In this document: in pieces, positions 543 through 32,873 of the stretch
Numbering within the stretch: the stretch's first letter is position 1
Layout: each line of letters begins with the position of its first letter
Origin: Epithemia pelagica
Taxonomy: Eukaryota > Protista > Bacillariophyta
Direction of reading: 5' to 3'
Length of the DNA stretch: 64,000 nt
Assembly (NCBI GenBank): GCA_946965045.2
Contig: OX337232.1
Location: forward strand, 1 to 64,000
Made by a program: the position numbers and the translations under genes
The notes under the pieces: model-generated
What the model saw: only the letters and a program-made list of their open reading frames with translations
What the model was told of the DNA's origin: nothing
Databases searched by the model: none

Positions 543-814
543 AAAAGAACGGGGGAACAACTAAGAGTGCGGTAATGGTTAGTAATGAATGAAATTAAGG
601 ACTCATATTAAATATGAGTGCTTAGAAATTAGACTTGAGCGGGGCATAGACATTCTGTGCTCATCTGCACAACGAGCAGTGCTCTTTTGCAATAAAAGGC
701 ATATATATCAGTGCTCATATGCACAGATACTATAGCCCCTTGTGCTCATATGCACACGTTCAAATCCTACGGTCTCTAGTACTAAAGACACCCAAAAAAG
801 GCAAATATCCTTAG
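543..814 (-). mobile_element. Segment 1: A-type element terminus, capped directly by telomere
   Basis: Near-identical to 4022-4292, 6769-7040 and 8338-8607; ends aaatatccTTAG at 814. Confidence 0.85.
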
Positions 815-2835
815 TGTAGGGTCCAATAACTATGACCCGACTGCTCTGTGACCATCAAAGTTGTATGCTGGTTATGTATTGCTGTCTCATCCACCTGGGG
901 AAAAAGTACATTGGACACAGATGTCCAAAAATGCCTGATTTGTGTACAGTCCGGGCGATCCTCAAACCCAAAGATGGTTGCCACAGCATCACCCATGTAG
1001 AATGCCTGATTATTTCTCACAGGAACAAGGCAACCAAGAGATTCATGGCGAAGTTCACATAGCACTCGAAAGACCATGTATGCTCGACTCAAGGTCATGC
1101 AAAGTTTGTGCTCAATCAAATTTTTACCTTTGTGGTGAACACTGAACGCTTTTTCACTGTGTGAGTAGTAATACACACAGCCTCCATGCCACCGCACGTC
1201 AGAAAACAGGCTACGAGAAATTTCAGTGTATCGCATGGACCCCAAACCTGTTCCATGAAATGCCAATTCCAAATAGGAGGCAAGGACATCAATGTCGCAG
1301 AGATCATAGTCGTCCTGAAGAACAATATCCTCTTGGGAGTAATTATTGTGACCCGATGCCAAAGTCATTGTTGTCTTGCCCATAGAACTCCAACACACGA
1401 ACAGTGGATATCGTCGATTCAGTAGATTCACCCAACGATTACCCTTGATCACCTTGCAAAGTGAAGCAACCAACTTGTCAAAGATGATCGGAATGACGTT
1501 CGACCATTTTTGAAACTTGAACATAAAACCATCAACAAGTATATCGTAGTTGTCTTGAATGGACACTTTCCGTGAAGACGGTGTGAGCGACTCTCTCTCC
1601 CGCATATGCCGAATCATACTTGCCAAAAAATTGACTGTGATGGAGTTTTGAACATTTTCCACCAGCCGAGAAGCTTTCTCATGGTAGCCCCGTCCCATGA
1701 AGTATATCATTGAGCAAATACTGGCCCGAAGCATGGCCAAAATGGCTGACAGCATTGTCGCAATGTAGGAGGGACTCCAAACAGAAAGTGTCTCTGAACC
1801 TTCTTGCCCCCGGACAACTCTCCCCGCGCAGTAGGTCATGACTGTGGTATGATGCTGAACAGAATCCACTGTTTCTAAACACAGCTTTGCCAGTAAAGAG
1901 GGAATATCTCTAGTGAGTGGCAGAAGTTTGTGGTTGCTTTGACACAGGAACGAGAGCAATTTCTTGAACTCGGGGAGAAGTCTTTTGGAGTATGCAGTGA
2001 AGGTGAAAGTAGAAATCGCATTGGGACTTCTTGCTCTATCAAAGACCAACAGCCTTGATCGGTAATTTGCTGGAACCATCTGGACATGGAGGGCAGCCTG
2101 TGCTGTGAGCCAGTTTTCTCCTTGATGGTACAACAAATCAAAGAGTGGTTGATTGTCGATGATGTGTTTCAAGTTGATGGAGTCATATAAGAAATGCACT
2201 CGTTCCTTGAATGACCTTCCCTTGGGCCTGGATGGGTAAGGTTCGTCTTGGGCCAAGGGATGGAAAAGGGGTACGAAACACCCCATCATATCGGGGAGTA
2301 CATGAAGAGTTGCTTGTAGTTGTGTGCTTGTTTTGAGTGAAGGGGCTTCTTGACAGGAATACTTGATCTGTAATGCCTTGAGGGAAATCATACGGCCACA
2401 GGTACTGATTTGTAGCTCCTCTTCTGTAGGGGAGGGAGCACCGCAGGTACGACCCGAGGACAAATGTCTGTACACATTTTGAAGTTTCAAGCTCCCAACA
2501 AGACAATGACATGAATAGCCCTTGACCTTTTCCCCCGTCATATATTCAGAGACACTTGAAATGTCTTGCATAACACTTTGAAGGAGGGTCATTTGATGTT
2601 CTATCAGTGACTGGCTTTCAGAACGTGAGACAGACACACCATGGCCATTAAGGTGCCTTTGCATGGACCATAGACTGGTTCCGAACGGTTTCCCACATAG
2701 GCGACACCCCATACCAAAGGGGGTCACTAGCGTGACATCGACAGCCTGTAGTTTGTTCTCTTCCTTTTTTTTCTTCGTTGGTCTCCTCCTTGATGGAGAA
2801 GGAGTCCCTGGCCCATTATTAGAGGGGGAAGCCAT
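811..2835 (-). CDS. Zn-finger + tyrosine-recombinase-like protein, family A' (674 aa), 3'-truncated; TLH-like N-terminal half
   Basis: N-terminal CRLC..HLNGH and CHC..RHL motifs. YR-like motifs HGTGLGSMRYTE (R), SHSEK (K), QIRHFWT (RH) and EQSGHS (GH). The stop codon is supplied by the junction at 811-814. Confidence 0.7.
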   Translation of the reverse strand: MASPSNNGPGTPSPSRRRPTKKKKEENKLQAVDVTLVTPFGMGCRLCGKPFGTSLWSMQRHLNGHGVSVSRSESQSLIEHQMTLLQSVMQDISSVSEYMTGEKVKGYSCHCLVGSLKLQNVYRHLSSGRTCGAPSPTEEELQISTCGRMISLKALQIKYSCQEAPSLKTSTQLQATLHVLPDMMGCFVPLFHPLAQDEPYPSRPKGRSFKERVHFLYDSINLKHIIDNQPLFDLLYHQGENWLTAQAALHVQMVPANYRSRLLVFDRARSPNAISTFTFTAYSKRLLPEFKKLLSFLCQSNHKLLPLTRDIPSLLAKLCLETVDSVQHHTTVMTYCAGRVVRGQEGSETLSVWSPSYIATMLSAILAMLRASICSMIYFMGRGYHEKASRLVENVQNSITVNFLASMIRHMRERESLTPSSRKVSIQDNYDILVDGFMFKFQKWSNVIPIIFDKLVASLCKVIKGNRWVNLLNRRYPLFVCWSSMGKTTMTLASGHNNYSQEDIVLQDDYDLCDIDVLASYLELAFHGTGLGSMRYTEISRSLFSDVRWHGGCVYYYSHSEKAFSVHHKGKNLIEHKLCMTLSRAYMVFRVLCELRHESLGCLVPVRNNQAFYMGDAVATIFGFEDRPDCTQIRHFWTSVSNVLFPQVDETAIHNQHTTLMVTEQSGHSYWTLH

Positions 2836-3057
2836 TGTCGATAGAGGTTTTGCTGAGAGTGTTCAAGAGACATCTTTCATCGTTCATCAAAGAAAGGGAG
2901 TGATGACCCTTTGCAGAATTGCATTGGGCCCAATTTACTGAACGAATGATGGGTAGGTACAAAGACCTAGAGGCATAAACTAGGAATGGTCAAAATGGGA
3001 TTTTGATGAGAACTAGTGATGGGTGGAATGAGATTTTTCTGTGAAATGCCAGCGTCA

Positions 3058-3069
3058 TTTGGCGGGAAA
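3058..3069. promoter_or_regulatory. E2F-type site TTTGGCGGGAAA in the family A' leader
   Basis: Canonical TTTSSCGS double site about 220 bp upstream of the ATG at 2835. Confidence 0.5.
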
Positions 3070-3217
3070 AAAGATTGTACAAAAAAGTTAGTTGGTCATT
3101 TGTGTACAAATATATGTCACTCGTACACACATATTAGCTGGTTTGTTGTAACAAGGAAATTTTGTACAGCAAACCAAAGGAAATTCAATCTTACGTTGAT
3201 TCTTCTATGTAGAGTAG

Positions 3218-3751
3218 GGCAAGACAAAAACCTAACTGGCAGAGCTCTGAAAAGTATTTGGCCAGTTTAGAGCATATTGAATATGACGGCTTTTCGGGAG
3301 TGGTCAAAGGGGCATAGACAAGGCCACTGCTCAATCGCAACAAAAGCATAACAAATTGCAGCTCATCCGCAACAAATCCTTGCTCATATGCAACAGGCAC
3401 TATAGGATTTTGTGCTCATATGCACACGTTCAAATTCTACGGTCTCTAGTACTAAAAGCTCCCAAAAAAGTGAAATATCCTTAGGGCAAGACAAAAACCT
3501 AACTGGCAGAGCTCTGAAAAGTATTTGGCCAGTATAAAGCATATTGAATATGACGGCTTTTGGGGAGTGGTCAAAGGGGCATAGACAAGGCCACTGCTCA
3601 ATCGCAACAAAAGCATAACAAATTGCAGCTCATCCGCAACAAATCCTTGCTCATATGCAACAGGCACTTTAGGATTTTGTGCTCATATGCACACGTTCAA
3701 ATTCTACGATCTCTAGTACTTAAAGCTCCCAAAAAAGTGAAATATCCTTAG
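3218..3751 (-). repeat. Two tandem A'-type termini (3218-3484 and 3485-3751, about 267 bp each)
   Basis: Both run ggcaagacaaaaacctaactggc ... gaaatatccTTAG. Confidence 0.9.
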
Positions 3752-4292
3752 AGTTGGATTTCCTTGTAGCCTATCGAAGTACAATGGTAAACTATCAGAT
3801 GTTCATGAATCTGGCCGGTGCATGGAACAGAGGAAGAGACATAACCAGCCGACTCTCAAGCAAAAGCAAGGATGGGCCTCTTTGCAAGAGTCATAATTCA
3901 TGAAACAACAATGACCTTTTGTTGGGCCAAGTGAGGTTTTCAGGTGAAGATGTTGGGCCAATTGAGGTTTTCAGGTGAAGATGTTTGGCGCGAAGGGGCA
4001 CGCAGGCGAGCTTTTCGCGCCAAAGAATGGGGGAACAACTAAGAGTGCGGTAATGGTTAGTAATGAATGAAATTAAAGACTCATACTGAATATGAGTGCT
4101 TAGAAATTGGACTTGAGCGGGGCATAGACATTCTGTGCTCATCTGCACAAGGGGCAGTGCTCTTTTGCAACAAAAGGCATATATATCAGTGCTCATATGC
4201 ACAGATACTATAGCCTCTTGTGCTCATATGCACACGTTCAAATCCTACGGTGTCTAGTACTAAAGACACCCAAAAAAGGCAAATATCCTTAG
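3752..4292 (-). mobile_element. Segment 4: A-type terminus plus leader, no substantial CDS
   Basis: From about 3820 it matches 8135-8607; ends aaatatccTTAG|gg at 4292. Confidence 0.8.
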
Positions 4293-5674
4293 GGATGACG
4301 TGACTCCAATATTCCCTTCGGAATTCAAAGCCATCGACTGCAATATTGCCAATAGGAGTAACAGAGACCTTTTGTGATGATGGCTTGAGGTTTTCTAATT
4401 CTCATTTTTCGAATAGTCGAGCCAAGAAAGTTGATGGTGAAACTTTCTTGGGCCTGTTGTATCATTGCCATGCCTTGCGTAGCGTAGTCACCTTGCATGT
4501 CGTAGACAATGGAGCACATGCTTGCCCTCAAAATGGCAAGGATTGTAGATAGGGTGGAAGCAATAAATCCAGGTGATGAGACCCTCAGTGACCCACCATC
4601 TGCAGTGTCCTTCTTCAAAAGTAGTCTCCCAACACAGTATCTCACGATCGTAGTGTGAGAACAAACATTGGGAATGGTCTCCAATGCAGCTTGTGCGATC
4701 AAACTGGCAATTGACCGCATTCTTGTAGGTGATTCTTTGGCAAAGAACAAATTTTGGTCAGTCCTCCACAGAAACACAAGCAGCTTCATCAGCTCAGGGA
4801 CCAGCCTCTCGGGATACTTAGTGAAGACAAAGGTTGTATGACTTGAAAAGCCACCATCCAATTTTGATCCTTGTTGAAAAGCCAATAGTCTTGCACGGAA
4901 ATTGGCTGGGACCATCTGGACATGCATCAGTGCAAGCTTGGTCAGCCATCTTTTTCCCTCCTCCAAGACAACCTGAAGCAAGACTGGTTGATTGGTAAGG
5001 TTGCTGTCTTCATGAATCATGTCAAATAGCTTGTTCATGTGTTCTCCAAAGGAGCCTTCCTTCCCATGAACCAACGGGTGAAAGATGGGAGTGAACACCC
5101 GTAGCTGGTCGGGAGCAATCTCTAGAGTCATTTGGATAGTGTCAGATGTGATGTCAAAACATGTGGGGCCTTGTTGAGTAAAGTGTGCTCGAATAGCCTG
5201 CAATGACACCCATCTCCAGCAGGTAGACAAAACAAGAACCTCTTGTATAGGGACAGCCCCACAAGTCCTCTTGGAATGCAAGTGCCGCTTCATGTTGGAC
5301 AATTTGGGAGACCCAACAATGCACTTGCACGAATATCCTGCCAATTTCTCATCTGTAAGATACTGCACAACGGATGAAAAATTCTGTCTCACTTGCTCCT
5401 CTTTATTCTTTCTCATGCTCTGCATTCTCAAATTCTCTCCCATGGAAACTGTGATTACATGGGAGTTGAAGTGTCGTTGCATGGACCACAACGAAGCCCC
5501 AAATGGTTTGTCACAGACCCGACATCCAAAACCAAAGGGAGTCACCAAGGTCATTTCTTCACACGACAATCCAACATTGCTCATTCCTCCACCATTACAG
5601 AGTCTTATTTTTTTCATGGGCCTTCTCCTTGAAGGAGATGGGGTCCCCGGCCCAACGGTAGAAATGGGAGCCAT
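4293..5674 (-). pseudogene. ZnF/YR-element gene, family B copy 1; frameshift near 4400, truncated at 4293
   Basis: ORF 4325..5683 is homologous to the 674-aa protein. After a 1-nt shift the reading continues ELENLKPSSQKVSVTPIGNIAVDGFEFRREYWSHVIP, matching ERESLTPSSRKVSIQDNYDILVDGFMFKFQKWSNVIP up to the junction. Confidence 0.8.
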
Positions 5675-5699
5675 TGTCAACAAGAGTCTTTTCGATGTG

Positions 5700-6142
5700 A
5701 CGGTTCACAAAAGAAACAAGGTACAACGCAAGGTCATTCACTCACTATCTTCATGTGAAAGAGGCCCTAAGCAAGGTCATTCACTACAAAATCTGGCAAC
5801 GAATGAGGCCCTAAGCACTAGAAAGTCTGGCTGTGAAAAAGGCCCTAAGGATTATCATTGAGACAAAACTCCTTTAGCGTTAGTCCCTGTCCTTGTTGTC
5901 ATGTTACAATGGTCATATTGAATATAATCGCGCGGGAGAAAAATGGCGCACCAGAGCCCGGCTTAATTGGTTTTGGAGCTCAAGTGCAAAGTGGCATATC
6001 AAAACCAAAGCTCAAGTGCAAAAAGGGCCATACCTAGCTGTACCTATGGGAGCTCATATGCAAAATATGCAGCTCAAGTGCAACCTGTAGAAAGCTACGG
6101 GCTCTGGTACAAAAACTAGAATCTAGACCTAAATTTCCTTAG
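5700..6142 (-). mobile_element. B-type leader and terminus (also about 10620-11072 and 11970-12418)
   Basis: Three near-identical copies ending ctagacctaaatttccTTAG; repeated gctcaagtgcaa motif. Confidence 0.85.
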
Positions 6143-6621
6143 GAATATGGTTTACTACGGAGAGTTAATGTAGGTTTGCAAATCGACCTTCTTGTGGTCG
6201 AAATCGACCTTTTTGTGGTCGCACTAAAATTTCGCACGCAACAATACAGTGATTCAAAATTGACCTTTTTGTGGTCGCGCATGTGATTCTACAGAATGAA
6301 CTTTGTGCGCGCGACAAAAAGGTCGATTTCTAGCAAAACTTAGGGTCATTCACCTCAAAAACTGAAAAGGCCCTAACGCCAGAGATCATTCACCTCAAAA
6401 TCTTTGAGCGACAAGAAGGAAAATGGTTTACTATGGAGAGTTAATGTAGGTTTGCAAATCGACCTTCTTGTGGTCGAAATCGACCTTTTTGTGGTCGCAC
6501 TAAAATTTCGCACGCAACAATACAGTGATTCAAAATTGACCTTTTTGTGGTCGCGCATGTGATTCTACAGAATGAACTTAGTGCGCACGACAAAAAGGTC
6601 GATTTCTAGCAAAACCCTTAG
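6143..6621 (-). mobile_element. Two D-type termini (6143-6343 and 6344-6621) without CDS
   Basis: Both match the terminus of segment 10 (about 9168-9481); end ggtcgatttctagcaaaac(cc)TTAG. Confidence 0.85.
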
Positions 6622-7040
6622 GGCCTTTTTGCAAGAGTCATAATTCATGAAACAACAATGACCTTTTGTTGGGCCAATTGAGGTTTTCAGGTGAAGATGT
6701 TGGGCCTATTGAGGTTTTCAGGTGAAGATGTTTGGCGCGAAGGGACACGCAGGCAAGCTTTTCGCGCCAAAAGAACGGGGGAACAACTAAGAGTGCGGTA
6801 ATGGTTAGTAATGAATGAAATTAAGGACTCATATTGAATATGAGTGCTTAGAAATTAGACTTGAGCGGGGCATAGACATTCTGTGCTCATCTGCACAAGG
6901 GGCAGTGCTCTTTTGCAACAAAAGGCATATATATCAGTGCTCATATGCACAGATACTATAGCCCCTTGTGCTCATATGCACACGTTCAAATCCTACCGTC
7001 TCTAGTACTAAAGACACCGAAAAAAGGCAAATATCCTTAG
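6622..7040 (-). mobile_element. Segment 8: A-type terminus only (419 bp)
   Basis: Matches 8191-8607; ends aaatatccTTAG|gg. Confidence 0.85.
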
Positions 7041-8118
7041 GGCCCAGTACGGACAATGACCCTGCGGTGTCCTTATGCCGCAAAGTCCGGCCAACCGCAT
7101 AAGTCATGAGCATAGTATGGTGCCTGACAGAGTCAGGTGTCTCGAGACACAGATCAACAAGTAATGACTGTAAGTCACATTCTCTCTTCATAATGGATGG
7201 CTGCTGCTTGTGGATGAAGCACAACAATTTCTGGAGCTCTGGAACAAGTCGGTTTGGAAACTTGGTGAATGTGTAGGTCGTATTTGCTCCAGCATGTGAC
7301 CCACTTTCCCTTGTACCATCAAATACCAAAAGCTTCGACCGAAAATTTGCTGGGACCATTTTCACATGAATTGGAGCGCCATGCAACAACCACTTCTCTC
7401 CAAAATCATAGAAAAACTTGAGTATGGGTTCGTTGACTTCATCTTTGCCGGTAGTGGTTGTCAGAGAAAGCAAATTTTCCATCCGTTCTTGAAAGGTTGC
7501 TCCATCTGGCTTGGAAGAGTAGTGTTCCTCCTGAGCCAATGGATGAAACAAAGGAACAAAACAATCAACCATCTCCTCAGATACCATATGGAAAGTTTGG
7601 GTGACCGCTCTCTTTGTTTTCAAGATTGGATCCTCTTGGGAATATTTCATACTGACAGCAGTCATAGATACCAGCCTCCCACAAGAAGTGACTTGTAATT
7701 GTTCCCTCTCAGGCCCAATGGCTCCACAGGAGTTAGGCGAGGAGAGATGACGCATAACATTGCTGAGTCTTGTCCAACCAACAAGACACCTGCAGGAATA
7801 TCCAAGAACAGACCTCCCCGTGAAGAAGTTTTTTGCGGTATGAGGGTCTTCTTGCAAAATTTGCTCAAGGGACTGTTTTCTTGCAACAAGGAGTCGGTTG
7901 TCAGTGGCTGAGACACAGACTCCATGTTGATTTAGATGTCGCTGCATCGACCAAAGACTTTCTCCGAATGATTTCTTGCATATGCCGCATCCCATACCAA
8001 AGGGTGTCACAATTGTAGCATCTAAACATGACAAGCCAATGCCCTGATCGGAACGGATCTTCTTCACAGGCCGTCTCCGGGATGGAGATGGCGTTCCAGG
8101 CCCATTGTTGGTAGCCAT
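7041..8118 (-). pseudogene. ZnF/YR-element gene, family A, truncated at 7041
   Basis: MATNNGPGTPSPSRRRP..TPFGMGCGICKKSF..QRHLNQH aligns with the 674-aa protein to ..GSLSVLGP; the ORF-track tail KDICLF.. is read-through into the next terminus. Confidence 0.8.
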
Positions 8119-8299
8119 TGCTGGTTTCCTTGTGTGCATGGAACAGAGGAAGAGACATAACCAGCCGACTCTCAAGCAAAAGCAAGGATGGGCCTCTTTG
8201 CAAGAGTCATAATTCATGAAACAACAATGACCTTTTGTTGGGCCAATTGAGGTTTTCAGGTGAAGATGTTGGGCCTATTGAGGTTTTCAGGTGAAGATG

Positions 8300-8340
8300 T
8301 TTGGCGCGAAGGGGCGCGCAGGCGAGCTTTTCGCGCCAAA
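8300..8340. promoter_or_regulatory. Inverted pair of E2F-type sites (TTTGGCGCGAA ... TTTCGCGCCAAA) in the family A leader; also 3984-4024 and 6731-6771
   Basis: TTTCGCGCCAAA is the classical DHFR-promoter E2F element; the 11-bp arms form a perfect inverted repeat. Confidence 0.5.
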
Positions 8341-8603
8341 GAATGGGGGAACAACTAAGAGTGCGGTAATGGTTAGTAATGAATGAAATTAAGGACTCAT
8401 ATTGAATATGAGTGCTTAGAAATTAGACTTGAGCGGGGCATAGACATTCTGTGCTCATCTGCACAAGGGGCAGTGCTCTTTTGCAACAAAAGGCATATAT
8501 ATCAGTGCTCATATGCACAGATACTATAGCCCTTGTGCTCATATGCACACGTTCAAATCCTACGGTGTCTAGTACTAAAGACACCCAAAAAAGGCAAATA
8601 TCC

Positions 8604-9095
8604 TTAGGGTAACCTGCTGCAGGGCAGCGGCATGGTAAATGTTGAATTCTCAACTTGAATTATTGGGGTCCAGTTGGTTTCTTGCTGCATGGTTTCTCTT
8701 TGGGGCCTTGGCATGAAGCATCCACACTTCAGCTTGTGGAAGGTCTTCGGAATCACTTCAGCATTGTTGCAACAACCAGCAGTGTGCTTCTCGCACAAAA
8801 GCTTCTTGTGAAACATCTTGTCACAGTGACCACAGAAATACTTGATATCTGTTTCCTTGGACTCGTGTATGAAACAATCAAACGGTTGGTTGTTGGCATT
8901 CTCCACCAAGTCGTGTATCTTTTTTCCAAGATGTCTTCCAGGGAACCGAAATGACACTGCATGAACCTCAGAGCAAGTCTTGGCGTGACGAGCAAGGCAC
9001 TTCATGTTTGCTCGGAAACCAACACCACAGAGTTTACAGACCAAGCCACAGGGTGTGGCAAAGTCCACAAGCCCCAAGTAATCGTCAAACTCCAT
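8604..9095 (-). pseudogene. Divergent Zn-finger gene, family D, truncated at 8608
   Basis: ATPCGLVCKLCGVGF..LARH and YFCGHCDKMFHKKLLCEKH parallel the two Zn motifs of families A and B; stop created by the TTAG junction. Confidence 0.7.
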
Positions 9096-9481
9096 GGTGG
9101 CTGTTGTCGTTCCTATGGTCAAAATAGGTTTGGGACGTATGACCCTCAAAAAAGAGGCCCTAAAGAGGGTCATTCACCTCAAAAACTGAAAAGGCCCTAA
9201 CACCAGTCATTCACCTCAAAAACTGAAAAGGCCCTAACACCAGAGATCATTCACCTCAAAATCTTTGAGCGACAAGAAGGAATATGGTTTACTATGGAGA
9301 GTTAATGTAGGTTCTGAAATCGACCTTTTTCCGGTCGAAATCGACCTTTTTCCGGTCGCACTAAATATAGCACGCAGCAATACAGTGATTTGAAATCGAC
9401 CTTTTTCCGGTCGCGCATGTGATTCTACAGAGTGAACTTAGTGCGCACCGGAAAAAGGTCAATTTCTAGCAAAACTATTAG

Positions 9482-10603
9482 GGTGGAAGCAATAAATCCA
9501 GGTGATGAGACCCTCAGTGACCCACCATCTGCAGTGTCCTTCTTCAAAAGTAGTCTCCCAACACAGTATCTCACGATCGTAGTGTGATAATGAACATTGG
9601 GAATGGTCTCCAATGCAGCTTGTGCGATCAAACTGGCAATTGACCGCATTCTTGTAGGTGATTCTTTGGCAAAGAACAAATTTTGGTCAGTCCTCCACAG
9701 AAACACAAGCAGCTTCATCAGCTCAGGGACCAGCCTCTTGGGATACTTAGTGAAGACAAAGGTTGTATGACTTGAAAAGCCACCATCCAATTTTGATCCT
9801 TGTTGAAAAGCCAATAGTCTTGCACGGAAATTGGCTGGGACCATCTGGACATGCATCGGCGCAAGCTTGGTCAGCCATCTCTTTCCCTCCTCCAAGACAA
9901 CCTGAATCAAGACCGGTTGATTGGTAAGGTTGCTGTCTTCATGAATCATGTCAAATAGCTTGTTCATGTGTTCTCCAAAGGAGCCTTCCTTCCCATGAAC
10001 CAATGGGTGAAAGATGGGAGTGAACACCCGTAGCTGGTCGGGAGCAATCTCTAGAGTCTTTTGGATAGTGTCAGATGTGATGTCGAAACATGTGGGGCCT
10101 TGTTGAGTAAAGTGTGCTCGAATAGCCTGCAATGACACCCATCTCCAGCAGGTAGACAAAACAAGAACCTCTTGTATAGGGACAGCCCCACAAGTCCTCT
10201 TGGAATGCAAGTATTGCTTCATGTTGGACAATTTGGGTGACCCAACAATGCACTTGCACGAATATCCTACCAATTTCTCATCTGTAAGATACTGCACAAC
10301 GGATGAAAAATTCTGTCTCACTTGGTCCTCTTTATTCTTTCTCATGCTCTGCAGTCTCAAATTCTCTCCCATGGAAACTGTGATTCCATGGGAGTTGAAG
10401 TGTTGTTGCATGGACCACAACAAAGCCCCAAATGGTTTGTCACAGACCCGACATCCGAAACCAAAGGGAGTCACCAAGGTCATTTCTTCACACGACAATC
10501 CAACATTGCTCATTCCTCCACCATTGCAGAGTCTTATCTTTTTCATGGGCCTTCTCCTTGAAGGAGATGAGGTCCCCGGCCCAACGGTAGAAATGGGAGC
10601 CAT
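9482..10603 (-). pseudogene. ZnF/YR-element gene, family B copy 2, truncated at 9482
   Basis: Near-identical to copy 1 up to ..GFIASTL; cut at the site that reads gaTAG|GGtgg in copy 1 (4550-4555). Confidence 0.85.
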
Positions 10604-11072
10604 TGTCAACAAGAGTCTTTTCGATGTGACGGTTCACAAAAGAAACCAGGTACAACGCAAGGTCATTCACTCACTATCTTCATGTGAAAGAGGCCCTAAG
10701 CAAGGTCATTCACTACAAAATCTGGCAACGAATGAGGCCCTTAGCACAAGAATGTCTGGCTGTGAAGAAGGCCCTAATGATTATCATTGAGACAAAACTC
10801 CTTTAGCGTTAGTCCCTATCCATGTTGTCATGTAACAATGGTCATATTGAATACAATCGCGCGGGAGAAAAAATGGCGCACCAGAGCCCGGCTTAATTGG
10901 TTTTGGAGCTCAAGTGCAAAGTGGCATATCAAAACCAAAGCTCATGTGCAAAAAGGGCCATACCTATCTGCACCGATGGGAGCTCATATGCAAAATATGC
11001 ACCTCAAGTGCAACCTGTAGAAAGCTACGGGCTCTGGTACAAAAACTAGAATCTAGACCTAAATTTCCTTAG

Positions 11073-11949
11073 GGACCAGCCTCTTGGGATACTTAGTGAA
11101 GACAAAGGTTGTATGACTTGAAAAGCCACCATCCAATTTTGATCCTTGTTGAAAAGCCAATAGTCTTGCACGGAAATTGGCTGGGACCATCTGGACATGC
11201 ATCGGCGCAAGCTTGGTCAGCCATCTTTTTCCTTCCTCCAAGACAACCTGAAACAAGACCGGTTGATTGGTAAGGTTGCTGTCTTCATGAATCATGTGAA
11301 ATAGCTTGTTCATGTGTTCTCCAAAGGAGCCTTCCTTCCCATGAACCAATGGGTGAAAGATGGGAGTGAACACCCGTAGCTGGTTGGGAGCAATCTCTAG
11401 AGTCTTTTGGATAGTGTCAGATGTGATGTCGAAACATGTGGGGCCCTGTTGAGTAAAGTGTGCTCGAATAGCCTGCAATGACACCCATCTCCAGCAGGTA
11501 GACAAAACAAGAACCTCTTGTATAGGGACAGCCCCACAAGTCCTCTTGGAATGCAAGTGTCGCTTCATGTTGGACAATTTGGGAGACCCAACAATGCACT
11601 TGCATGAATATCCTGCCAATTTCTCATCTGTAAGATACTGCACAACGGATGAAAAATTCTGTCTCACTTGGTCCTCTTTATTCTTTCTCATGCTCTGCAG
11701 TCTCAAATTCTCTCCCATGGAAACTGTGATTCCATGGGAGTTGAAGTGTCGTTGCATGGACCACAACAAAGCCCCAAATGGTTTGTCACAGACCCGACAT
11801 CCGAAACCAAAGGGAGTCACCAAGGTCATTTCTTCACACGACAATCCAACATTGCTCATTCCTCCACCATTGCAGAGTCTTATCTTTTTCATGGGCCTTC
11901 TCCTTGAAGGAGATGAGGTCCCCGGCCCAACGGTAGAAATGGGAGCCAT
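11073..11949 (-). pseudogene. ZnF/YR-element gene, family B copy 3, truncated at 11073
   Basis: Near-identical to copies 1 and 2 up to ..KRLVP; cut at the site that reads ctCAG|GGacc in the longer copies. Confidence 0.85.
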
Positions 11950-12418
11950 TGTCAACAAGAGTCTTTTCGATGTGACGGTTCACAAAAGAAACCAGGTACA
12001 ACGCAAGGTCATTCACTCACTATCTTCATGTGAAAGAGGCCCTAAGCAAGGTCATTCACTACAAAATCTGGCAACGAATGAGGCCCTTAGCACAAGAATG
12101 TCTGGCTGTGAAGAAGGCCCTAATGATTATCATTGAGACAAAACTCCTTTAGCGTTAGTCCCTATCCATGTTGTCATGTAACAATGGTCATATTGAATAC
12201 AATCGCGCGGGAGAAAAAATGGCGCACCAGAGCCCGGCTTAATTGGTTTTGGAGCTCAAGTGCAAAGTGGCATATCAAAACCAAGGCTCAAGTGCAAAAA
12301 GGGCCATACCTAGCTGTACCTATGGGAGCTCATATGCAAAATATGCAGCTCAAGTGCAACCTGTAGAAAGCTACGGGCTCTGGTACAAAAACTAGAATCT
12401 AGACCTAAATTTCCTTAG

Positions 12419-12941
12419 GGTCAGGAATGAAGACAATGATGCGGAAAAGGCTGAATCCTATCTGGCAAGGCTTACAAGAGAATGCATTGTGTGCAAGGAG
12501 GCAGGATGCAATGGTGAAAGCTGTCTGCCCTATGGAGCATGCTTCAACTGTGGTCAGCCAGGTCACCAGAGAGGACAGTGCCGAGTCGATTTCCAAACAG
12601 TCTTGAGCAACAAGGCCTGCTTTTACTGCTTTGATGTGTTCAGCAGGCGCGGCTACAAGCAACACAATCCCAGTGCATGTCCTTTACAACGAAGATTGAA
12701 GCGGCTGATGATCGATGTATATGAGTCAAGGAAGACCAATGGACAATCCAGAGCAATGACTGATTTCATGTCCAAAGTAACATGCGACAGCCATTCGTTT
12801 CATGATTTTCTGTGTCAGAGTGTTGAACAACGGATGGGCATGACAGTGACACAGACACCTCATGCAACCACAGCAGCCAGACCGTCTGTGGCACGACCAG
12901 CTCTACCAAGGAATCCATATGCAAAGAAAGCATTCAAGTAG
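12419..12941 (+). pseudogene. 5'-truncated C-terminal fragment with Cys/His zinc-knuckle motifs; probable tail of the element's large protein
   Basis: The frame is open back to the junction: RVRNEDNDAEKAESYLARLTRECIVCKEAGCNGESCLPYGACFNCGQPGHQRGQC..CFYCFD..H..C. It contains a perfect CX2CX4HX4C. Confidence 0.65.
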
Positions 12942-13169
12942 ATAGTATTAAGTTAGTAGTTACCGTGTGTCGGGTTAAAGACCATCATCAAAAGACCCAT
13001 AGAAGAGTCATCTCACAAAAAATCTAATCACGTCTCACAAAAAAATATTAGGCCCAAAGAAGGGTCATTTCACACAAAAATCTGACCCAGTCACACATGT
13101 AGTGACGGGAAATGATACTACTCGAGCTAAGACTAACTAATAAGCATGGGCATAGGTATGACTAGAATA

Positions 13170-13300
13170 GGGCTGTTCTTGCGGGCTGTTCCGCAGTGGG
13201 ACAGCAGGCTGTTCTACAGTGGGACAGGGCACTTCTGCAGTGGGACAGAGGGCGATTCTGCAGTGGGACAAGTGGGATGGGGGCTGTTCTGCAGTGGGAC
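13170..13300 (+). repeat. Five subterminal repeats ttc(t/c)(g/a)cagtgggac
   Basis: Copies at about 13189, 13212, 13233, 13256 and 13287, followed by cctacgg..actttctccTTAG (13343). Confidence 0.85.
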
Positions 13301-13429
13301 GCTAGAGTCTACGTAGGCCTACGGACAGGCACTTTCTCCTTAGAGTAAGCCATGACACTGGATGCAAAACTAATAACTAAAACGCCTACGAACAATCCCC
13401 TTTCGTGACGTTATTGAAAAACTTGTTTA

Positions 13430-15260
13430 CTATGGTTCAGGCACTTCGAGCTCCAATCCGACGTAGTAGTTTTGGGCCAACCAGGGCAGTGCAGTGGGTC
13501 GCCATTCATAGACCGCCATGCCCAATCCATTGGCCGTAAAGCAGCCCTTGAAGGCCTGGTTCCAAAAGGTGAATTGGGGACGACCCGTTCCAGTCGTTGT
13601 TGCGGTGGTGCGTTTGGGTTGGTACTGTCCCTCTTGGATCACGGCTTGATACAAGGCTTGTCGCGCCGCCGGAATGCCTTCATCTTGGGGCCCCGTGCCA
13701 CCAAAGGTAACCACCGCCACTCGTCGGGGGCCCACCCATGTATACCGACACTCGGGTTCCATGCTTGTCGTCGTCGTCGTGGTACTCGACGATGACGGTT
13801 CCTCGGCTGTCGTGTCTGGTTCGTCCTCATCCTCAACGTGGTTGCTGGTGGCGGGAGACCACACGAGTTGCGATTGAAGTTCGACCGAAAGAGGAATCTG
13901 CCATTGCAACAACACACCATTCGTCGCGTTGTTGTTGTTGTTGCTACTGCGAATTTGGAGTTCGAGCGGCGAGGTGGGGACAAATCGTTCTTGGGTCGGT
14001 CCCACAGTCGATAGGGCCGACACGCCAAAGGCATGACTCGGCAAGACTTGGGCCAATTGCACGGTCCGATCCATGCTGGTATCGACCTCTGTCGGTGTCA
14101 CATACCATCGTCCGGGCCAGTCCCTAATTTCATAGCCACGTCGTTTTTGCACCACAACGTGAGGTTGCACTTCGGCCGACGGTGTCATGCCAATGTGATA
14201 CAAATCCCAAAAGCGCGGCACTAATTGACTGGCGAGGTAGTGATTGCGCAACAGGGACACTTGATCGTTCTTGTTGTTGGTGGTGTCATGTCCACCAAAC
14301 AAGAAATCGTCTTGTTGCACAATACTCCATGATGACGAATCGAGTTGTCGTTCCAATTGCAAGTGGGAGGATCCGACCAAGAGGACCCGAGGTTCCCAGG
14401 CGAATTCGGACCAGGCCACGGACAGTTCTCAATGCAGTTCCATTGAGAGACTGTGCCTCGACAGCAAGAAAACCCAGACGGCAACCGGCACCTTGAATCC
14501 ATTGGAGGCTTTACAATATGCCTTGTACGGCTTTGAACGCGTCGATGTCGCAACTACAGTGGGTCGCCCACTACCCAACGACACGTATAACAATAATAAC
14601 CAACCTTTGTCAGTGGGTGTCTTCCACACCAACTTGGTGGCATAGCCCTTCAACTCCACCCCTTCCTTGTTGTCCGCCGCAGTCCTTTCCATCTCTAATT
14701 CGGCGTCATCATACAAGACCTGATTGATGCCTCAAAACGATCCCATGCGCCATAGGACGACGACTCGCTCGTTTTGCCGTCCGCTCATAGGACTTCCATG
14801 GCTCCGGCTTTGGCGTCGTTAACTTCTTCCTTTTCTTTCTCGCCCCCAAGAAATTCGGCTCCTCAAATGGCCGGTGTGGTCGTCGTCGAGCTTGCGGAAG
14901 TGGTAGTGCGGTCGACCGAACGGCGCGATTGACGACGCTTTGTTGGAATAGTGGGCGTGGATTCCACCGACGACGATGATGACGACGACAGAGTCAAGAC
15001 AAAGCGAGCACGTGTTGGTGGGACGGCAAGACAAACAGAAACGACAGATTGGGGATGATGGCTGTCGTTGATGTGGTGGCTGTGGTGGTCGCAAGGAGGA
15101 CCCTGGAACCCGCATGATGGAAGCATCGTCCGATCGTCGAGCCCCAGCGGTACCTCCTTGCTGAAAGGCCCCTACCACACCGGTGCCTTGGTTCCATTCG
15201 ACGACAACGACGACAACGACGACGACGACAAGCAGCCACAGCATCCGAACCGCCTTCATA
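13430..15260 (-). pseudogene. Decayed gene: signal-peptide-like start, possible SnoaL/DUF2358-like region, SOUL heme-binding-like C-terminus
   Basis: C-terminal WVGPRRVAVVTFGG..ARQALYQAV; hydrophobic N-terminus MKAVRMLWLLVVV..VGAF; in-frame TGA at 14429-14431 and further stops or frameshifts upstream. Confidence 0.45.
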
Positions 15261-15793
15261 TCGTTGGCCCGTTTCCGTCCCACCAAATCCTTGCGTGACA
15301 ATCCACGACCTCGTGGACGCCTTGTCTCGCTCACCAACACATTTAAATTGTGCATCGTTGTCCATGAGTGTTCGGAGCACCTCCACGTGGAAGTGATGAG
15401 ACCGGGTGCGGCTATACTGCAGCTATGCTCTTCTTTTGTGTCGAGAAAAACTTGAATCCCCCAATAGATGCTCGGAAACGGGATTCGATTCAGCCGGAAG
15501 GGTGGACTACCTAATACTCCTAATAGAGAAATATCCCATCCCATTAGATAGTCTCAATGGTGTTTCGAACTGCACAAGACTCTATGTCTCTCTCTTTATA
15601 TATAAATAGAGAGAGAGAGAGACAGAGGATGACAATGAAACACTGGATTAATGGAACGACTGTCCACCCGGTTACGCCAGTCTACAGACTAGGTTCTTCC
15701 CCTCGCTTTTCAATGTTCTGTGGTGGCGGTGGTTGAATAGTTCCCAAAGGATCTGTTTCAGGTAACGAAATACATGCCTCCGCTCCACCATCA

Positions 15794-18139
15794 TCAAATC
15801 TGTAGAGCCTCAAAGAGATTGTCAACTCGATCCTGATTGTGTGACGACTTTCGCAAAAGGTTCTTCGGCGAGTCTTCACATGCCACAAAGGCATGCGAAG
15901 AATAGATCTCGGTCTGCTCCAAACTATGACCCAGGTTTTGAACTGCGTTAGAGACACCAAAGTCATCCTGCTCGGGGACGCAAACCAAACGAAAGACATC
16001 CGTATCCGGAAATGGCTTCAAACTCATAGAATTCAGGTTTTCATCCGAAATAGTGGGAGGGTCTAAGCAGCCCAGCAAAATAATGATACACACTGCGGTG
16101 GGTTCCGCTTCATCCTTTCGAAGGCCTTTCAGAAACTCCGTCATCGTGGCCGACCAAAGATCAACATCTGATTTCGAAACGTTGGCCCAATTCTTGACGG
16201 TCACCAGCAGAGGGTGAAACGTGCACCGTACCGGGGAGACCTGTTTTACCCTGATCGATGCCGCAATATCAAAGGCCTTGCAATTCTTGTAGGCATAGCT
16301 GGCAAGACCTGCGAGATAAAGGCGGCTCAAATATGTTTGCTTGCAAAAAGACTTTCCTCGAAAATCATTTCGGCAAACTTGGATAAAAGATATCGTGTTT
16401 GAGGTTTCTCCAGTTCTTTCTTGGGTGGTAAGGATGGCAGCGTCAGAGTCCACCGCTAGATATTCAGTATGGGCATTTCCCTCCGCATCTTCCGGGCTGG
16501 AGTCGGTTGGTTTTCTGCCGCCGCTTTTCAAGAGTCGAAACCATTCGTCCAACGAAACAGAAAAGATTGAGAGTCCTGAGTCAGTCTCTTTTCGCAGCAC
16601 ATCACCGCAGAAAAGCATGTACAACGCGGCAAAAATTTCGACCGCGTCCCCCTTATCGGGTAGACACAATTTGGTGGTGAATGCCTTCTCCGCCTGACGA
16701 GTCCAAAATTGCTTTCCGTAGCCCTGGAGCTCTCCGTCCTGCCACGTTTCGTCCATCAACCGCATGGCCAGGGTCGCGCACAGCGGATCCGGCATAAATG
16801 TCACTTGCGCCAGAGGAGTAGAGGCATTGTTCTCCTGTTGTCGAAAGCTAACCAAACAGGCGTATCCAGAGCTCACCAGCTCGGTCAATGTGTGAAAGGA
16901 GTTGACGATTCCCATCTGCACTCGTGTACCCAAAACGCTGTAGCAGGCAGAAAGATCCTTTTCATAGTTTGCGCATGACAACACCAAACGCTTGGCAAAT
17001 TCTGTCAGCTTTTTCGGATCCAGCGTATTTGTGATATAGTAGTAGGCAAACAACGGTCTTCCGTAGATCACCGCCTCTGGAAATTGTGACTCTGTGGATA
17101 CTACTGCGCTCGTGCTGCGCAGAGTCTCTTGCTCCATCCCTCGCAAGCAAGACATTGTATTCAGCTCAAAAAAGGGCGGATACAACATTTTCTTGTCGCC
17201 TTCACCGGCTTTATAATTCACATATGTGATCGTCGCTGATCGTGAAACACTTCGCCGAGGGGGATCGGGTGGGAAAAAGTTGGAGAGCTCAACTGTCGTT
17301 CCAGCAAAGACGGCAACCACTTGGGCCTTGCGCTTTTTTCGCAGCCACCATCGAATGGCTCGAAACACTAGAGAACCCTTTCCTTCCGCATCAACTCCTT
17401 CCATCAGACCTTGTGCTTCATCGAAAAGAAGTACCACTTTGCCACTCAATCCACGAATAATGCTGTCCATTCTTTCAAAGACGGTCTCCACGATAGTGTC
17501 GGTGGTTTGGACGAGTTGGTGGTCAAAAAACTTGTGTCTAGTTTCCGAGCTGAGATGTACGTCCAGACAGAGGATCGTTTGACAGTGTTGTCCTTCCTGT
17601 TGGTTGTAATGGTCGCGAAACTCGTGAAACAATTTGGTTTTTCCCATTCCACTTGATTGAACAAGTGCAAAGTAGGGCGCCCGAAATTTCATAGAAATCG
17701 CCGAGTTTGTATGCCACAAAAAGAGATTTTCGATGCGTTCCCCAAAGGCTTTCAAGTCGAGGGCGTGCACAAGCTTTGTATCCAAACCATCTACAATGCT
17801 GGGACCTCGATGATTGGATTTGGCCTCTTGAAGTTCCGGGAACAAGATTTTCAAGGCCTCTTTCGCATGATCCTCCGTAAAAGCTGGATAATCCAGAAAA
17901 AGAGCTCCTAGGATATAGTTGACACGACTGTTGTGTTCCTGTTTTTCTGAGAAACGGTTGGTTGACGTGACTTTTTTCAACTTCTGGACAATACTGATGT
18001 CGAAACCATTCTGCTCCACGAATGCTTTCCATTGTGACGACAGTTCGGATCCTTCTTCGTCCATCTCCATGTCGCTTGCATTCATCCTCGTCGAATTGGC
18101 TTTTACTTGCAAGCGAGGCTTTTTCGTTGGACCGCTCAT
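15794..18139 (-). CDS. P-loop NTPase + restriction-endonuclease-like protein (Crinkler/CR-NTPase-REase-type), 781 aa
   Basis: Walker A variant APYFALVQSSGMGKT, Walker B LLFDEAQ, YGRPLF motif, and C-terminal AFDIAASI..LLVTVKN resembling a PD-(D/E)xK motif. Confidence 0.7.
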   Translation of the reverse strand: MSGPTKKPRLQVKANSTRMNASDMEMDEEGSELSSQWKAFVEQNGFDISIVQKLKKVTSTNRFSEKQEHNSRVNYILGALFLDYPAFTEDHAKEALKILFPELQEAKSNHRGPSIVDGLDTKLVHALDLKAFGERIENLFLWHTNSAISMKFRAPYFALVQSSGMGKTKLFHEFRDHYNQQEGQHCQTILCLDVHLSSETRHKFFDHQLVQTTDTIVETVFERMDSIIRGLSGKVVLLFDEAQGLMEGVDAEGKGSLVFRAIRWWLRKKRKAQVVAVFAGTTVELSNFFPPDPPRRSVSRSATITYVNYKAGEGDKKMLYPPFFELNTMSCLRGMEQETLRSTSAVVSTESQFPEAVIYGRPLFAYYYITNTLDPKKLTEFAKRLVLSCANYEKDLSACYSVLGTRVQMGIVNSFHTLTELVSSGYACLVSFRQQENNASTPLAQVTFMPDPLCATLAMRLMDETWQDGELQGYGKQFWTRQAEKAFTTKLCLPDKGDAVEIFAALYMLFCGDVLRKETDSGLSIFSVSLDEWFRLLKSGGRKPTDSSPEDAEGNAHTEYLAVDSDAAILTTQERTGETSNTISFIQVCRNDFRGKSFCKQTYLSRLYLAGLASYAYKNCKAFDIAASIRVKQVSPVRCTFHPLLVTVKNWANVSKSDVDLWSATMTEFLKGLRKDEAEPTAVCIIILLGCLDPPTISDENLNSMSLKPFPDTDVFRLVCVPEQDDFGVSNAVQNLGHSLEQTEIYSSHAFVACEDSPKNLLRKSSHNQDRVDNLFEALQI

Positions 18140-30850: not shown

Positions 30851-31751
30851 AATCAACCCAAAGATCATCACGGGACAACACAATGGGTTGGTCCACATCC
30901 TTTCTGTGTCTCAACGCCATGCTCTCTATGACAGTCCTTACTCAGAATGTCCACCTCGCAGCAGCAGCAGCAGCACCAACCAGCGGAATGGAAAATGGTG
31001 CATTGCACCATACACATGAATATCGCTACCTTCTACAACGGGTCGATCTACACTCAAACGTGTCGTCGTTGGCATCGACGGGATCTCTCCCACAGCCATT
31101 CGTACCAGCCGTTTAGGAATCCTTGGACGACAGTCACCCTCCACAAAGAATACTACTGCAACAGCTGCTTTGGGTATCCGAGGCAGCCGACCATTACAAT
31201 TCTTCACCGACAAGGACGACGACCCGCGTCTTTAGATGATTCACCACCATGAGTCATCGTTGTGACCACCAAAAAGACCCACTGCACAACGACAACGACG
31301 GCAACAACCACCATTGGTAGATCCGGAGCGAAACATTCCCACTCGAGCACCACATTCATGCACCACACCATGGCGAAGAACTAGACTCGCAGATTCTTCC
31401 CTCTCGTAGTTGCGCACCTTTACAAGTGGAGAAAAGTCTGTCGTCTATCCTTGGACTTTCTGGAGTGGACCACAATGGAACCAGGAATTCCGTTTCGTGG
31501 CGGTCCATACCACGTCCATACACGTTACGGGTCGAGAGAACCGAGTTTCGCACCTCCTCTTTGCTGGTTCGCGTACGCTCCAACCAGTCCACGGTTGTTG
31601 AATTTCTCACGAGCGTGGAAGGATCCTGCACGACGCCAGTCAATTTGCTATTTGTGAGTCGTTTTGGATGGAGGACGGACCGGGTGAGTCGAGAACAATA
31701 ACAGCCTCCACTCAAAAGACCCATCTTACTTTGGGAACGAGAGCAATCACA

Positions 31752-32873
31752 ATGGAAATCCAAAAGCAAGCGTTCTTGTCTGGATTGGTCTTTGCCAGCG
31801 ACAAAGACCAAAAGATACCGCAATGGAGGCTAACTGGATGGTCTCCATGTTTGGGAGACCGTCGGTTTACCCATGGGACGGTTGTTGTACGTCGTCAAGG
31901 CGAGGAGATTGTGGTACTGTTGGGAGGATGTGCCATACCAAGTTGCGTCCCATTGAATTCAGGTGTTTGTTTCAATGTTCAAAGCAAGAAGTGGCAAGAA
32001 GGGCCATGTATGCATGAAAAACGAGCATGTCCTGCGTCGGTACTATGCAACAACGCTATTTACGTCATTGGTGGATACAACTGTACCAACGGCTTCAATT
32101 CATTGGATACAATTGAACGTATCCAAGTCGAGGACTTGATGCATTCGTCGTCAGCTTCCATCAAGGACACGAGAAAATGGCAGAAGCTGCAATGTCGTTT
32201 GTCTACGCCACGCTACGACTGCGCCGCAGCTGTTGTGCATGATAGATTCATTGTGGTGGCAGGAGGACGGTGTTTTTTCGGACTGGAAGGACGAAATCGC
32301 CCTTCCCGACTGACCGAAATATCCTCGGTTGAAATACTTGACACAGCAGCATCCGGAAATCCATGCACCGTCATATCTGGACCCTCCTTACATCACACTC
32401 GTTGTGAGTTTGGAATGGCTGTGGTTGGTCAACGCATTTATGTTGTGGGTGGGAGATCGTTGAGCTCCGTGGAATATCTGGACTTTGATGACATGTTGGA
32501 CGATTCACCAAATTGTGCATCATCTGTGTTTTCTTCGAGCAAGTCGTGGACGATCCACAAAAACCTCCATCTGAACATATCTGAAGAGGTTCATGCTGTC
32601 GTTCAAGTGGGCTCCTGTCTCGTTGTTGCAGGAGGTTGGAAAAACCGGTCCAAGCGCTCGGTTAAAGTCTTGGATACCGTAAACAATATTGTTTGGGAGC
32701 TTCCGAAGACGATCGGGTACAGTTGGGGTTGTAGCACGGTTACCTTGTCGAGTGGGATTGTTGCCATGAATGGCTGTGATTCGAGAGACGCATTTGAAAC
32801 GCTGTCACTTGTGGACAAGACCAGTTGGCTTTTTGCTCATTTGTTGTCCATTGGGAAAGTCCCAACCATCTAA
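31752..32873 (+). CDS. Kelch-repeat protein K2
   Basis: Intact frame from MEIQKQAF to IGKVPTI; repeated GG-containing kelch motifs; no BTB domain. Confidence 0.85.
   Translation: MEIQKQAFLSGLVFASDKDQKIPQWRLTGWSPCLGDRRFTHGTVVVRRQGEEIVVLLGGCAIPSCVPLNSGVCFNVQSKKWQEGPCMHEKRACPASVLCNNAIYVIGGYNCTNGFNSLDTIERIQVEDLMHSSSASIKDTRKWQKLQCRLSTPRYDCAAAVVHDRFIVVAGGRCFFGLEGRNRPSRLTEISSVEILDTAASGNPCTVISGPSLHHTRCEFGMAVVGQRIYVVGGRSLSSVEYLDFDDMLDDSPNCASSVFSSSKSWTIHKNLHLNISEEVHAVVQVGSCLVVAGGWKNRSKRSVKVLDTVNNIVWELPKTIGYSWGCSTVTLSSGIVAMNGCDSRDAFETLSLVDKTSWLFAHLLSIGKVPTI

Follow-up and report, generated by a model that had tools for sequence, protein, structure and literature searches.

Chromosome ends are known to be built by telomerase and, in flies, by arrays of retrotransposons. 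Fungal telomere-linked helicase (TLH) genes encode RecQ-like helicases, lie beside telomeres and are flanked by tandem repeats (PMC1635262). Cryptons, which are believed to move in a circular form, are interstitial, with two ends flanked by 4-6 bp direct repeats (TATGG in CryptonS), and CryptonS occurs in stramenopiles including a diatom (PMC3212892). The locus presented here is one end of contig OX337232.1 of the diatom Epithemia pelagica (GenBank assembly GCA_946965045.2), of which the first 64,000 nucleotides, called the window below, were analysed. Behind the telomere, between positions 543 and 13343, the window holds a stack of abutting segments. In our judgement these are probably the stacked remnants of one-ended mobile elements, "mobile chromosome ends", each of which reaches from its conserved terminus out to where the chromosome physically stops.

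As with TLH and the yeast Y' element, which were compared by description only, a RecQ-like helicase gene lies directly proximal to the telomere repeats at multiple ends of the diatom assembly. Tandem repeats, frequent truncation by erosion and the direction of the gene towards the tip are likewise common to both (PMC1635262). The diatom units differ in that the helicase is fused to a tyrosine-recombinase-like domain, in the base-precise conserved proximal terminus with its own repeats, and in stacking via short-overlap joints, not via homologous exchange. Cryptons resemble the units in being DNA elements with a tyrosine recombinase, here a predicted one, as sole recombination enzyme, and in sharing a few bases with the target. 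The diatom units, however, have one end, are terminated by the telomere and encode a RecQ-like helicase and CCHC knuckles; in Cryptons the recombinase is the sole enzymatic domain, next to GCR1_C or a conserved C-terminal region, and the word "helicase" occurs 0 times in the Crypton paper (PMC3212892). A Pfam scan gave no recombinase-family or DUF3504-type match, and the units are set apart from Cryptons by architecture, not by phylogeny.

The window opens at the chromosome tip (position 1), with the C-rich telomere strand as its + strand. The telomere is followed by 13 segments, every one of which terminates on the + strand in TTAG (at 814, 3484, 3751, 4292, 6142, 6343, 6621, 7040, 8607, 9481, 11072, 12418 and 13343). 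Families were named by their termini as A, A', B, D and E. From the tip inwards, the region consists of:

1-542, + strand: telomere, (CCCTAA)n.
543-814, - strand: layer 13 (outermost), A terminus remnant of 272 bp, A reference 1-271 at 96%, eroded and telomere-capped.
815-3484, - strand: layer 12, A' unit of 2670 bp, A' reference 1-2664 at 98.7%, terminus and 5' region.
3485-3751, - strand: layer 11, A' terminus remnant of 267 bp, interrupted at native CCCTAC.
3752-4292, - strand: layer 10, A terminus and 5' region (3818-4292) plus 66 bp (3752-3817).
4293-6142, - strand: layer 9, B unit of 1850 bp, B reference 1-1854 at 98%, with a truncated gene (open reading frame, ORF, 4325-5683).
6143-6343, - strand: layer 8, D terminus remnant of about 200 bp.
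6344-6621, - strand: layer 7, D terminus remnant of 278 bp.
6622-7040, - strand: layer 6, A terminus remnant of 419 bp.
7041-8607, - strand: layer 5, A unit of 1567 bp, A reference 1-1569 at 98.3%, with a truncated gene.
8608-9481, - strand: layer 4, D unit of 874 bp; ORF 8604-9173 covers codons 1-189 of the D gene.
9482-11072, - strand: layer 3, B unit of 1591 bp, truncated gene interrupted at native TAGGG.
11073-12418, - strand: layer 2, B unit of 1346 bp, truncated gene interrupted at native AGGG.
12419-13343, + strand: layer 1 (innermost), E unit of 925 bp, E reference 1-927 at 97.4%.

Tiling against full-length copies placed the start of every window segment at base 1 of its family reference; segments break off after 200-2670 bp, at the next terminus. 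The same tiling recovered none of the distal remainders of the interrupted segments in the window, and self-comparison gave no further copies of stack sequences at 13.4-64 kb. Families A, A', B and D have a long ORF on the - strand which is directed to the tip and interrupted at the next joint. In layer 12, for instance, ORF 811-2835 represents the first 674 codons of the zinc finger-recombinase gene and is ended by joint 814. The E family has its terminus 3' of the gene, and the gene fragment in layer 1 is directed away from the telomere: the C-terminal CCHC part lies on the + strand (about 12420-12941), followed by a 3' region with TGTCCCACTGCAGAA-type repeats and by the terminus, ..ctccTTAG, which at 13343 abuts chromosome-specific DNA. 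The CCHC pattern common to layer 1 and to the degenerate tail of the D unit in another locus, L002, was first spotted by eye and later through alignment of the intact E protein; tblastx and blastn gave no match between the two. The 66 bp that separate the A' joint from the A 5' region had no match in the rest of the window or in the fetched loci. Scanning the region for Rfam families and tRNAs gave no hits. At the cap, the telomere was seeded de novo within the A-family 5' region on a native GG, the native sequence being ..cccccgttcttttGGcgcg and the window reading ..ttttGG|GTTAGGG on the - strand. Since the telomere was added inside the A 5' region, tips erode and are then healed by telomerase.

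Much of this anatomy had been described in an initial annotation made from the letters of the stretch. Its 13 stacked segments with TTAG ends at 543-13343 were recovered, as was the loss of distal remainders, which separates the stack from ordinary nesting, no segment beginning inside its family reference. The statement that no DNA lies between the segments holds overall but fails for the 66 bp at 3752-3817. Twelve termini of the same orientation had been counted; the orientation stands, but the innermost segment also ends in a terminus, which makes 13. Genes had been said to point to the tip, as they do in A, A', B and D but not in the E fragment, and a joint placed at 6143 was corrected to 6142.

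The joints follow a narrow rule. TTAG|GG was found at nine of the 13, as annotated initially, and the remaining four read TG, AG, GA and AG; at a regional GG dinucleotide frequency of 0.0575 the probability of at least 9/13 GG is about 4e-9. The word TCCTTAG is found 13 times in the window, where 4.45 would be expected; ten of the copies lie on the + strand at joints. The terminal words were aaatatccTTAG at six joints, aaatttccTTAG at three, the D type (aaaac..TTAG) at three and ctttctccTTAG at one.

Relatives found by protein search were confined to one European Nucleotide Archive assembly, ERZ21939226, and the fetched loci all lay at contig ends with the gene directed outwards. A neighbouring gene, which codes for a fucoxanthin chlorophyll a/c protein and matches diatom Fcpb7 at E 1e-85, marks the host as a diatom. 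The other ends considered here are those reached via protein look-ups only, seven in total including the window. All six of the further ends in this diatom assembly, whether of chromosomes or of contigs, showed the same build. Over the seven ends 47 termini were identified, every one on the centromere side of its unit and none reversed (47/47, two-sided P about 1e-14). All segments at these ends begin at family base 1 in the tiling and stop after 65 bp to 5.3 kb. No second terminus was present in any of the 47 units, complete units included, and the distal halves were absent from all fetched loci; at every joint everything distal is lost. Conventional nested insertion was ruled out, as no segment begins inside a family reference. 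Terminal inverted repeats, which the E terminus 3' of the gene had brought to mind, were ruled out as no unit has two termini; E is a family of its own, at 31% identity, in which the gene runs the opposite way.

A complete tip unit consists, in this order, of the terminus, family-specific repeats, one gene of 1300-1420 amino acids (aa), a satellite of 179-180 bp and the telomere. Two such units were found:

L007 9511-17633: complete unit with an A terminus, an intact 1306-codon gene, twenty 179-bp satellite copies and then (TTAGGG)n.
L005 15076-22390: complete unit like that of L007, the intact ORFs of the pair being 1306-1307 aa, with the satellite present.

The satellite is G/T-rich and lies between gene and telomere at L007 14018-17630 and L005 19650-22390; it was also found at L002 17900-21316 and L006 about 15000-17698. 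Both telomere additions observed in L005 and L007 begin inside a satellite unit. No joints were seen within the satellite, in which CCC is scarce on the strand concerned. An E copy at L005 6381-9641 encodes 951 aa with recombinase, helicase and CCHC parts.

At five of the seven ends the innermost terminus, standing against chromosome-specific DNA, is an E terminus (window 13343, L001 3774, L005 2257, L006 3718 and L007 5618), and each flank is different. Possibly E was the first family to colonise the ends, or it is the one that attaches best to non-element DNA. In L001, positions 6635-12029 and 12030-17317 are a tandem duplicate of a block of about 5.4 kb holding four layers, so that stacks also grow en bloc and the order of layers is no strict clock. 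A test of the newest-at-tip order by divergence from the reference showed no trend, and is unreliable as the references are arbitrary copies with subfamilies mixed. The sole ordinary nested insertion seen was a copia-type retrotransposon fragment (RVT_2) inside the stack at L006 4997-9645.

Altogether 43 distinct joints were obtained from the seven ends, and being distinct they arose independently and were not merely copied between ends. CC precedes 31 of them (P about 3e-29). For 26 joints an uninterrupted copy of the native sequence is known, and the cut site reads CCC in 11, CCCT in seven, CCCTA in five and CCT, CC or CT in three. As the interrupted sequence reads CCC, CCCT or CCCTA, the incoming end is CCCTAAGG, joined via 2-5 shared bases, and the GG of the TTAG|GG joints is common to both partners. 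Thus the donor point is fixed, and the recipient contributes a short overlap with CCC(TA). Read towards the tip, the terminus is CCCTAAGG(N)ATTT followed by family-specific short repeats. The terminal CCCTAAGG(A) is common to the families, apart from D, which instead has CCCTAA and a few variable bases; the terminal CCCTAA amounts to a single telomere unit, in the orientation opposite to that of the local telomere. Within 200 bp of the terminus lie 3-5 short repeats, specific to each family:

A and A': TGCATATGAGCA.
B: TTGCACTTGAGCT.
D: CGACCGGAAAAAGGTCGATTTC.
E: TGTCCCACTGCAGAA.

The five families are alike only in the terminal motif, and their proteins are 25-50% identical between families. 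Pairing of family-specific repeats with family-specific proteins is what would be expected of protein-binding sites at a recombination end.

Two joints deserve separate mention. Joint 814 (window 811-818), one of the four without GG, reads native ..ggaCCC, then a 4-nt filler TACA, then CTAAGGATATTT, the native copy being at L005 about 17734; judged from its letters, the filler looks like an abortive first copy of the start of the terminus, a signature of the polymerase type. Base 269 of A' (native CCCTAC) was used twice, by an incoming A' unit at window 3484/3485 and by a D unit at L007 8561, which suggests a preferred pseudo-site with a 5-nt match. In addition, the 5' regions of B and D contain 37-bp repeats each holding GGCCCTAA, which is TTAGGGCC towards the tip; CCCTAA occurs within them on the + strand at 5765, 5809, 5843, 6371, 9158, 9195 and 9232. 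These single telomere-like units, in the telomere's own orientation, could serve for binding or as points from which a telomere is healed.

A distant homologue, P0079 (1410 aa), was found on two contigs, L012 and L013, from two metagenomes of the Joint Genome Institute (JGI). The contigs are 100% identical over 5877 bp, beginning exactly at CCCTAAGGTATTTCGG (CCCTAAGGTATTT, a CCCTAAGG-type terminus), and the identity spans the gene and about 150 bp beyond, into the telomere, where both share the irregular repeat TTAGGG TTAGGG TTAGGGGG TTAGGG. Upstream of the terminus the flanks are unrelated, and one is an ordinary gene region. With identity running from the terminus into the same irregular telomere and with different flanks, the mobile unit reaches from terminus to telomere, and in this second organism an identical unit was transferred between two flanks. 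The terminal motif CCCTAAGGnATTT is kept between the organisms, the proteins of which are about 25-30% identical. Short-read metagenome contigs with distant homologues (L003, L004 and L009-L011) showed no clear termini. Upstream of the genes, L011 has CCCTAAGT (CCCTAAGTAGC at 819) and L010 has CCCTAATC (CCCTAATCACG at 1434), at distances of 0.6-1.1 kb; these may be termini, and are not significant alone.

Full-length products of 1300-1420 aa contain an N-terminal C2H2-like finger, a domain of about 370 aa, DEAD and Helicase_C domains, and C-terminal CCHC knuckles. The middle domain had no sequence match in Pfam, NCBIfam or PDB, known recombinase families included. With these searches empty, the recombinase assignment follows from motifs and predicted fold. 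A profile of the middle domain, run against 1.84 billion proteins, matched 391 representative clusters at E<=1e-3, with 276 below 1e-10. Twenty cluster members were looked up and all were metagenomic, several being named by JGI just RecQ-type helicases; the only named matches among homologues were metagenomic "superfamily II DNA helicase RecQ". The residues R, K, R, H and Y stand in the order known from the active site of tyrosine recombinases and type IB topoisomerases (TopIB): the first four do not vary among 47-49 diverse homologues, and Y is at least 90% conserved. In protein P0017 they are R541, K568, R645, H679 and Y688. The AlphaFold2 models have a predicted local distance difference test score of about 90 (90.7 for the catalytic part). 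Among the Foldseek matches of the catalytic part to PDB, the top 49 were all Cre, Tre, XerA, XerH, Flp, phage or archaeal integrases, YopR or TopIB (best E 1.2e-3, probability 0.99). Membership of the middle domain in the tyrosine-recombinase/TopIB superfamily is thus supported, and a cleavage activity is predicted. The best full-length matches of the helicase profile were RECQ5, BLM, RECQ1 and bacterial RecQ, with the zinc subdomain included.

These data bear on the more interpretative claims of the initial annotation. A tyrosine recombinase with a helicase downstream had been named, in agreement with the conserved residues and the structural matches. The elements had been called one-ended, as the 47 termini of one orientation without a second terminus bear out, and each joint was thought to replace everything distal, as the segments at all joints do. 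Capture of telomere-bearing arms, one of the routes considered, has direct support from L012 and L013. The proposed AG|GG-like target is indeed short, but 2-5 nt in common with CCCTA(A) is the better description. Likewise, the chronological tape holds as far as stacked remnants are concerned, but a strict order is undercut by the blocks duplicated en bloc. Other ends had been suggested for comparison, and the six further ones obey the same joint rule, CC standing before 31 of the 43 joints. A full-length element with both termini had also been sought: L005 and L007 provide intact finger-recombinase-helicase ORFs, but no element with both termini was found.

The chemistry of joining we infer to be recombinase exchange, primed copying or cut-and-rejoin. 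In the mechanism proposed, the recombinase domain would bind the repeats, via its finger or core-binding part, and break the DNA of the donor end at the terminus, and the helicase would open the donor DNA. The recipient would be a chromosome that had lost its own terminal unit, or had been cut within it, and its 3' end, finishing in CCC, would base-pair with GGG(AT) laid bare on the other strand of the donor. Extended along the donor tip, or ligated to it, the recipient would gain a whole new end including the telomere, and repeated rounds with erosion between them would leave a tape of proximal remnants. Reciprocal site-specific exchange predicts joints without a terminus, and none occurred in the tiling apart from two small stretches without match; the lack of such joints favours non-reciprocal addition. 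A more specific proposal is that the enzyme, a TopIB-like tyrosine recombinase fused to a RecQ helicase, nicks the donor terminus and the damaged recipient primes copying of the whole donor tip. The unit would then be a new class of eukaryotic mobile DNA, at once a selfish element and a telomerase-independent means of end repair, with TLH and Y' as degenerate relatives. This we put forward tentatively, as a possibility less secure than the one-ended elements themselves.

Several observations weigh against the interpretation as mobile chromosome ends. At four of the seven ends the contig stops in satellite or element, short of telomere repeats, and interstitial two-ended copies may exist elsewhere in the genome, since the ends covered are those reached by protein look-up. 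The fold matches are weak (template modelling scores 0.3-0.45), HxxR lacks its His, as it does in TopIB, and cleavage at the terminus is a prediction from the protein model. The variable register of the overlap and the 4-nt filler favour primed synthesis or end joining over a clean recombinase exchange, and the recombinase may only make the break, or may take no part in joining. Finally, the inverted telomere unit at the terminus has no explanation in the proposed model.

Part of the evidence would also suit host-driven subtelomere dynamics only, in which Y'/TLH-like repeats spread via break-induced replication and microhomology-mediated end joining once a telomere is lost, and the encoded protein serves telomere maintenance or nothing, without transposition. 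Fungi have telomere-adjacent RecQ-like helicase genes accompanied by tandem repeats (PMC1635262), microhomology and a templated filler are seen at the joints, four layers were duplicated en bloc in L001, and tips are eroded and telomerase-healed. Random microhomology repair, however, would not pick the same donor base in 43 independent joints of five families, nor conserve CCCTAAGGnATTT between organisms with proteins about 25-30% identical. Homologous copies at other ends would favour homologous repair, which makes no new joints, and family-specific repeats matched to family-specific proteins point to an interaction of protein and terminus; we therefore regard purely host-driven dynamics as unlikely. 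Somewhat less likely still is an RNA-mediated addition of the HeT-A/TART type or by an endonuclease-independent long interspersed nuclear element, in which a transcript ending ..CCUUAGGG-3' would be reverse-transcribed from the eroded 3' end of the chromosome, with reverse transcriptase (RT) acting in trans. Target-primed reverse transcription at chromosome ends would account for an intact proximal end, variable distal truncation, a single orientation and short microhomology; the CCHC knuckles at the protein end recall Gag, and the E terminus 3' of the gene is mRNA-like. Yet no unit encodes RT or has a poly(A) tail, and families A, A', B and D would need gene-antisense RNA begun in the distal satellite or telomere. 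The satellite arrays travel along with the units, and the irregular repeat common to L012 and L013 would be unexpected of fresh cDNA newly capped by telomerase.

A tyrosine-recombinase domain and insertion at short matching sequences, as in the Crypton model (PMC3212892), would also be in place if two-ended Crypton-like transposons with a circular intermediate had inserted preferentially into the outermost element, followed by repeated terminal deletion. We hold this to be very unlikely: a second terminus is present in 0/47 units, the distal halves are absent from the loci, complete units run into the telomere without a second boundary, and a deletion ending inside the newest element would be needed before each of dozens of insertions. 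The region does consist of repeats 96-99% identical and 0.2-2.7 kb long, from which collapsed or chimeric joining of repeated subtelomeric reads might be feared. An assembly artefact is nevertheless hardly credible, as the joints are base-precise under one rule at seven ends, with 43 distinct, and the same terminus rule recurs in short-read metagenome contigs of other samples.

Mobile chromosome ends also share traits with other known systems. HeT-A/TART/TAHRE, MoTeR, FoTeR and endonuclease-deficient Penelope-like elements form, like the diatom units, head-to-tail tip arrays of one orientation, with the proximal end intact, the distal side cut short to varying extents and the newest copy outermost. 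The diatom units differ from these telomeric retrotransposons in having no RT or poly(A) and in the CCCTAAGG joints; only the CCHC knuckles are Gag-like. They further differ in that genes are mostly directed to the tip, telomerase repeats form the cap, and each unit brings its own satellite and telomere together with recombinase and helicase. The TATE and VIPER elements of kinetoplastids, which are recombinase retroelements, were considered and are not the present element. In IS91/ISCR and Helitrons, as here, one specific end and a helicase suffice, and the other boundary falls where the process stops. Those systems, however, use an HUH nuclease and a superfamily 1 (SF1) helicase, Pif1-like in kind, and stop at a terminator or random site, Helitron ends being 5'-TC..CTRR-3'. 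The units described here gave no Rep match and have other ends; they combine a candidate nuclease of the tyrosine-recombinase/TopIB type with a RecQ-like helicase of SF2, and the stop is the chromosome end. Poxvirus and bacterial TopIB act at (C/T)CCTT, and such enzymes are able to link the end they have cut to foreign DNA if a few bases of the two pair. The catalytic set of the domain, R, K, R, H and Y without the recombinase His II, is of the TopIB type, as are several of the structural matches. The terminus ..(T/C)CCTTAG lies on the strand that would carry the covalent enzyme, which is a resemblance only; in the diatom the switch point comes after TTA or TTAG, not after CCTT. A limited literature search found no description of a published recombinase-helicase telomeric element. 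Within that search, the units appear to be an undescribed kind of element, the mechanism of which is proposed only.

Beyond 13.4 kb the window contains ordinary genes, including paralogous Kelch and BTB families. Four ORFs with Kelch repeats and two with BTB domains lie at 31668-32873, 35182-36348, 43153-44400 (- strand), 45752-46852 (- strand), 60075-61508 and 62185-63717, and the Kelch/BTB ORFs within 50 kb of the tip look like a subtelomeric amplification of gene families. Large intron-free ORFs lie just inside the stack at 15794-18139 (- strand), 18524-23647 (+ strand) and 24445-26913 (+ strand), with one weak match to AAA_22; ORFs of 1707 aa and 822 aa at this place were without a match in Pfam. 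Between 20 and 28 kb the strand composition is skewed.

If the proposed interpretation is true, mobile chromosome ends would represent a DNA-based, recombinase-driven third route to the building and repair of chromosome ends. They define a large protein family without Pfam annotation, together with a conserved DNA site that allows tests of the mechanism in vitro. They also offer a hypothesis for why RecQ-type helicase genes adjoin telomeres in fungi and yeast, namely possible descent from mobile elements; fungal TLH and Y' as degenerate relatives would, if this is true, explain telomeric helicase genes across eukaryotes. In the diatom itself, the stacks are a readable record of end loss and end capture, and could be used to gauge the turnover of chromosome ends in diatom populations.

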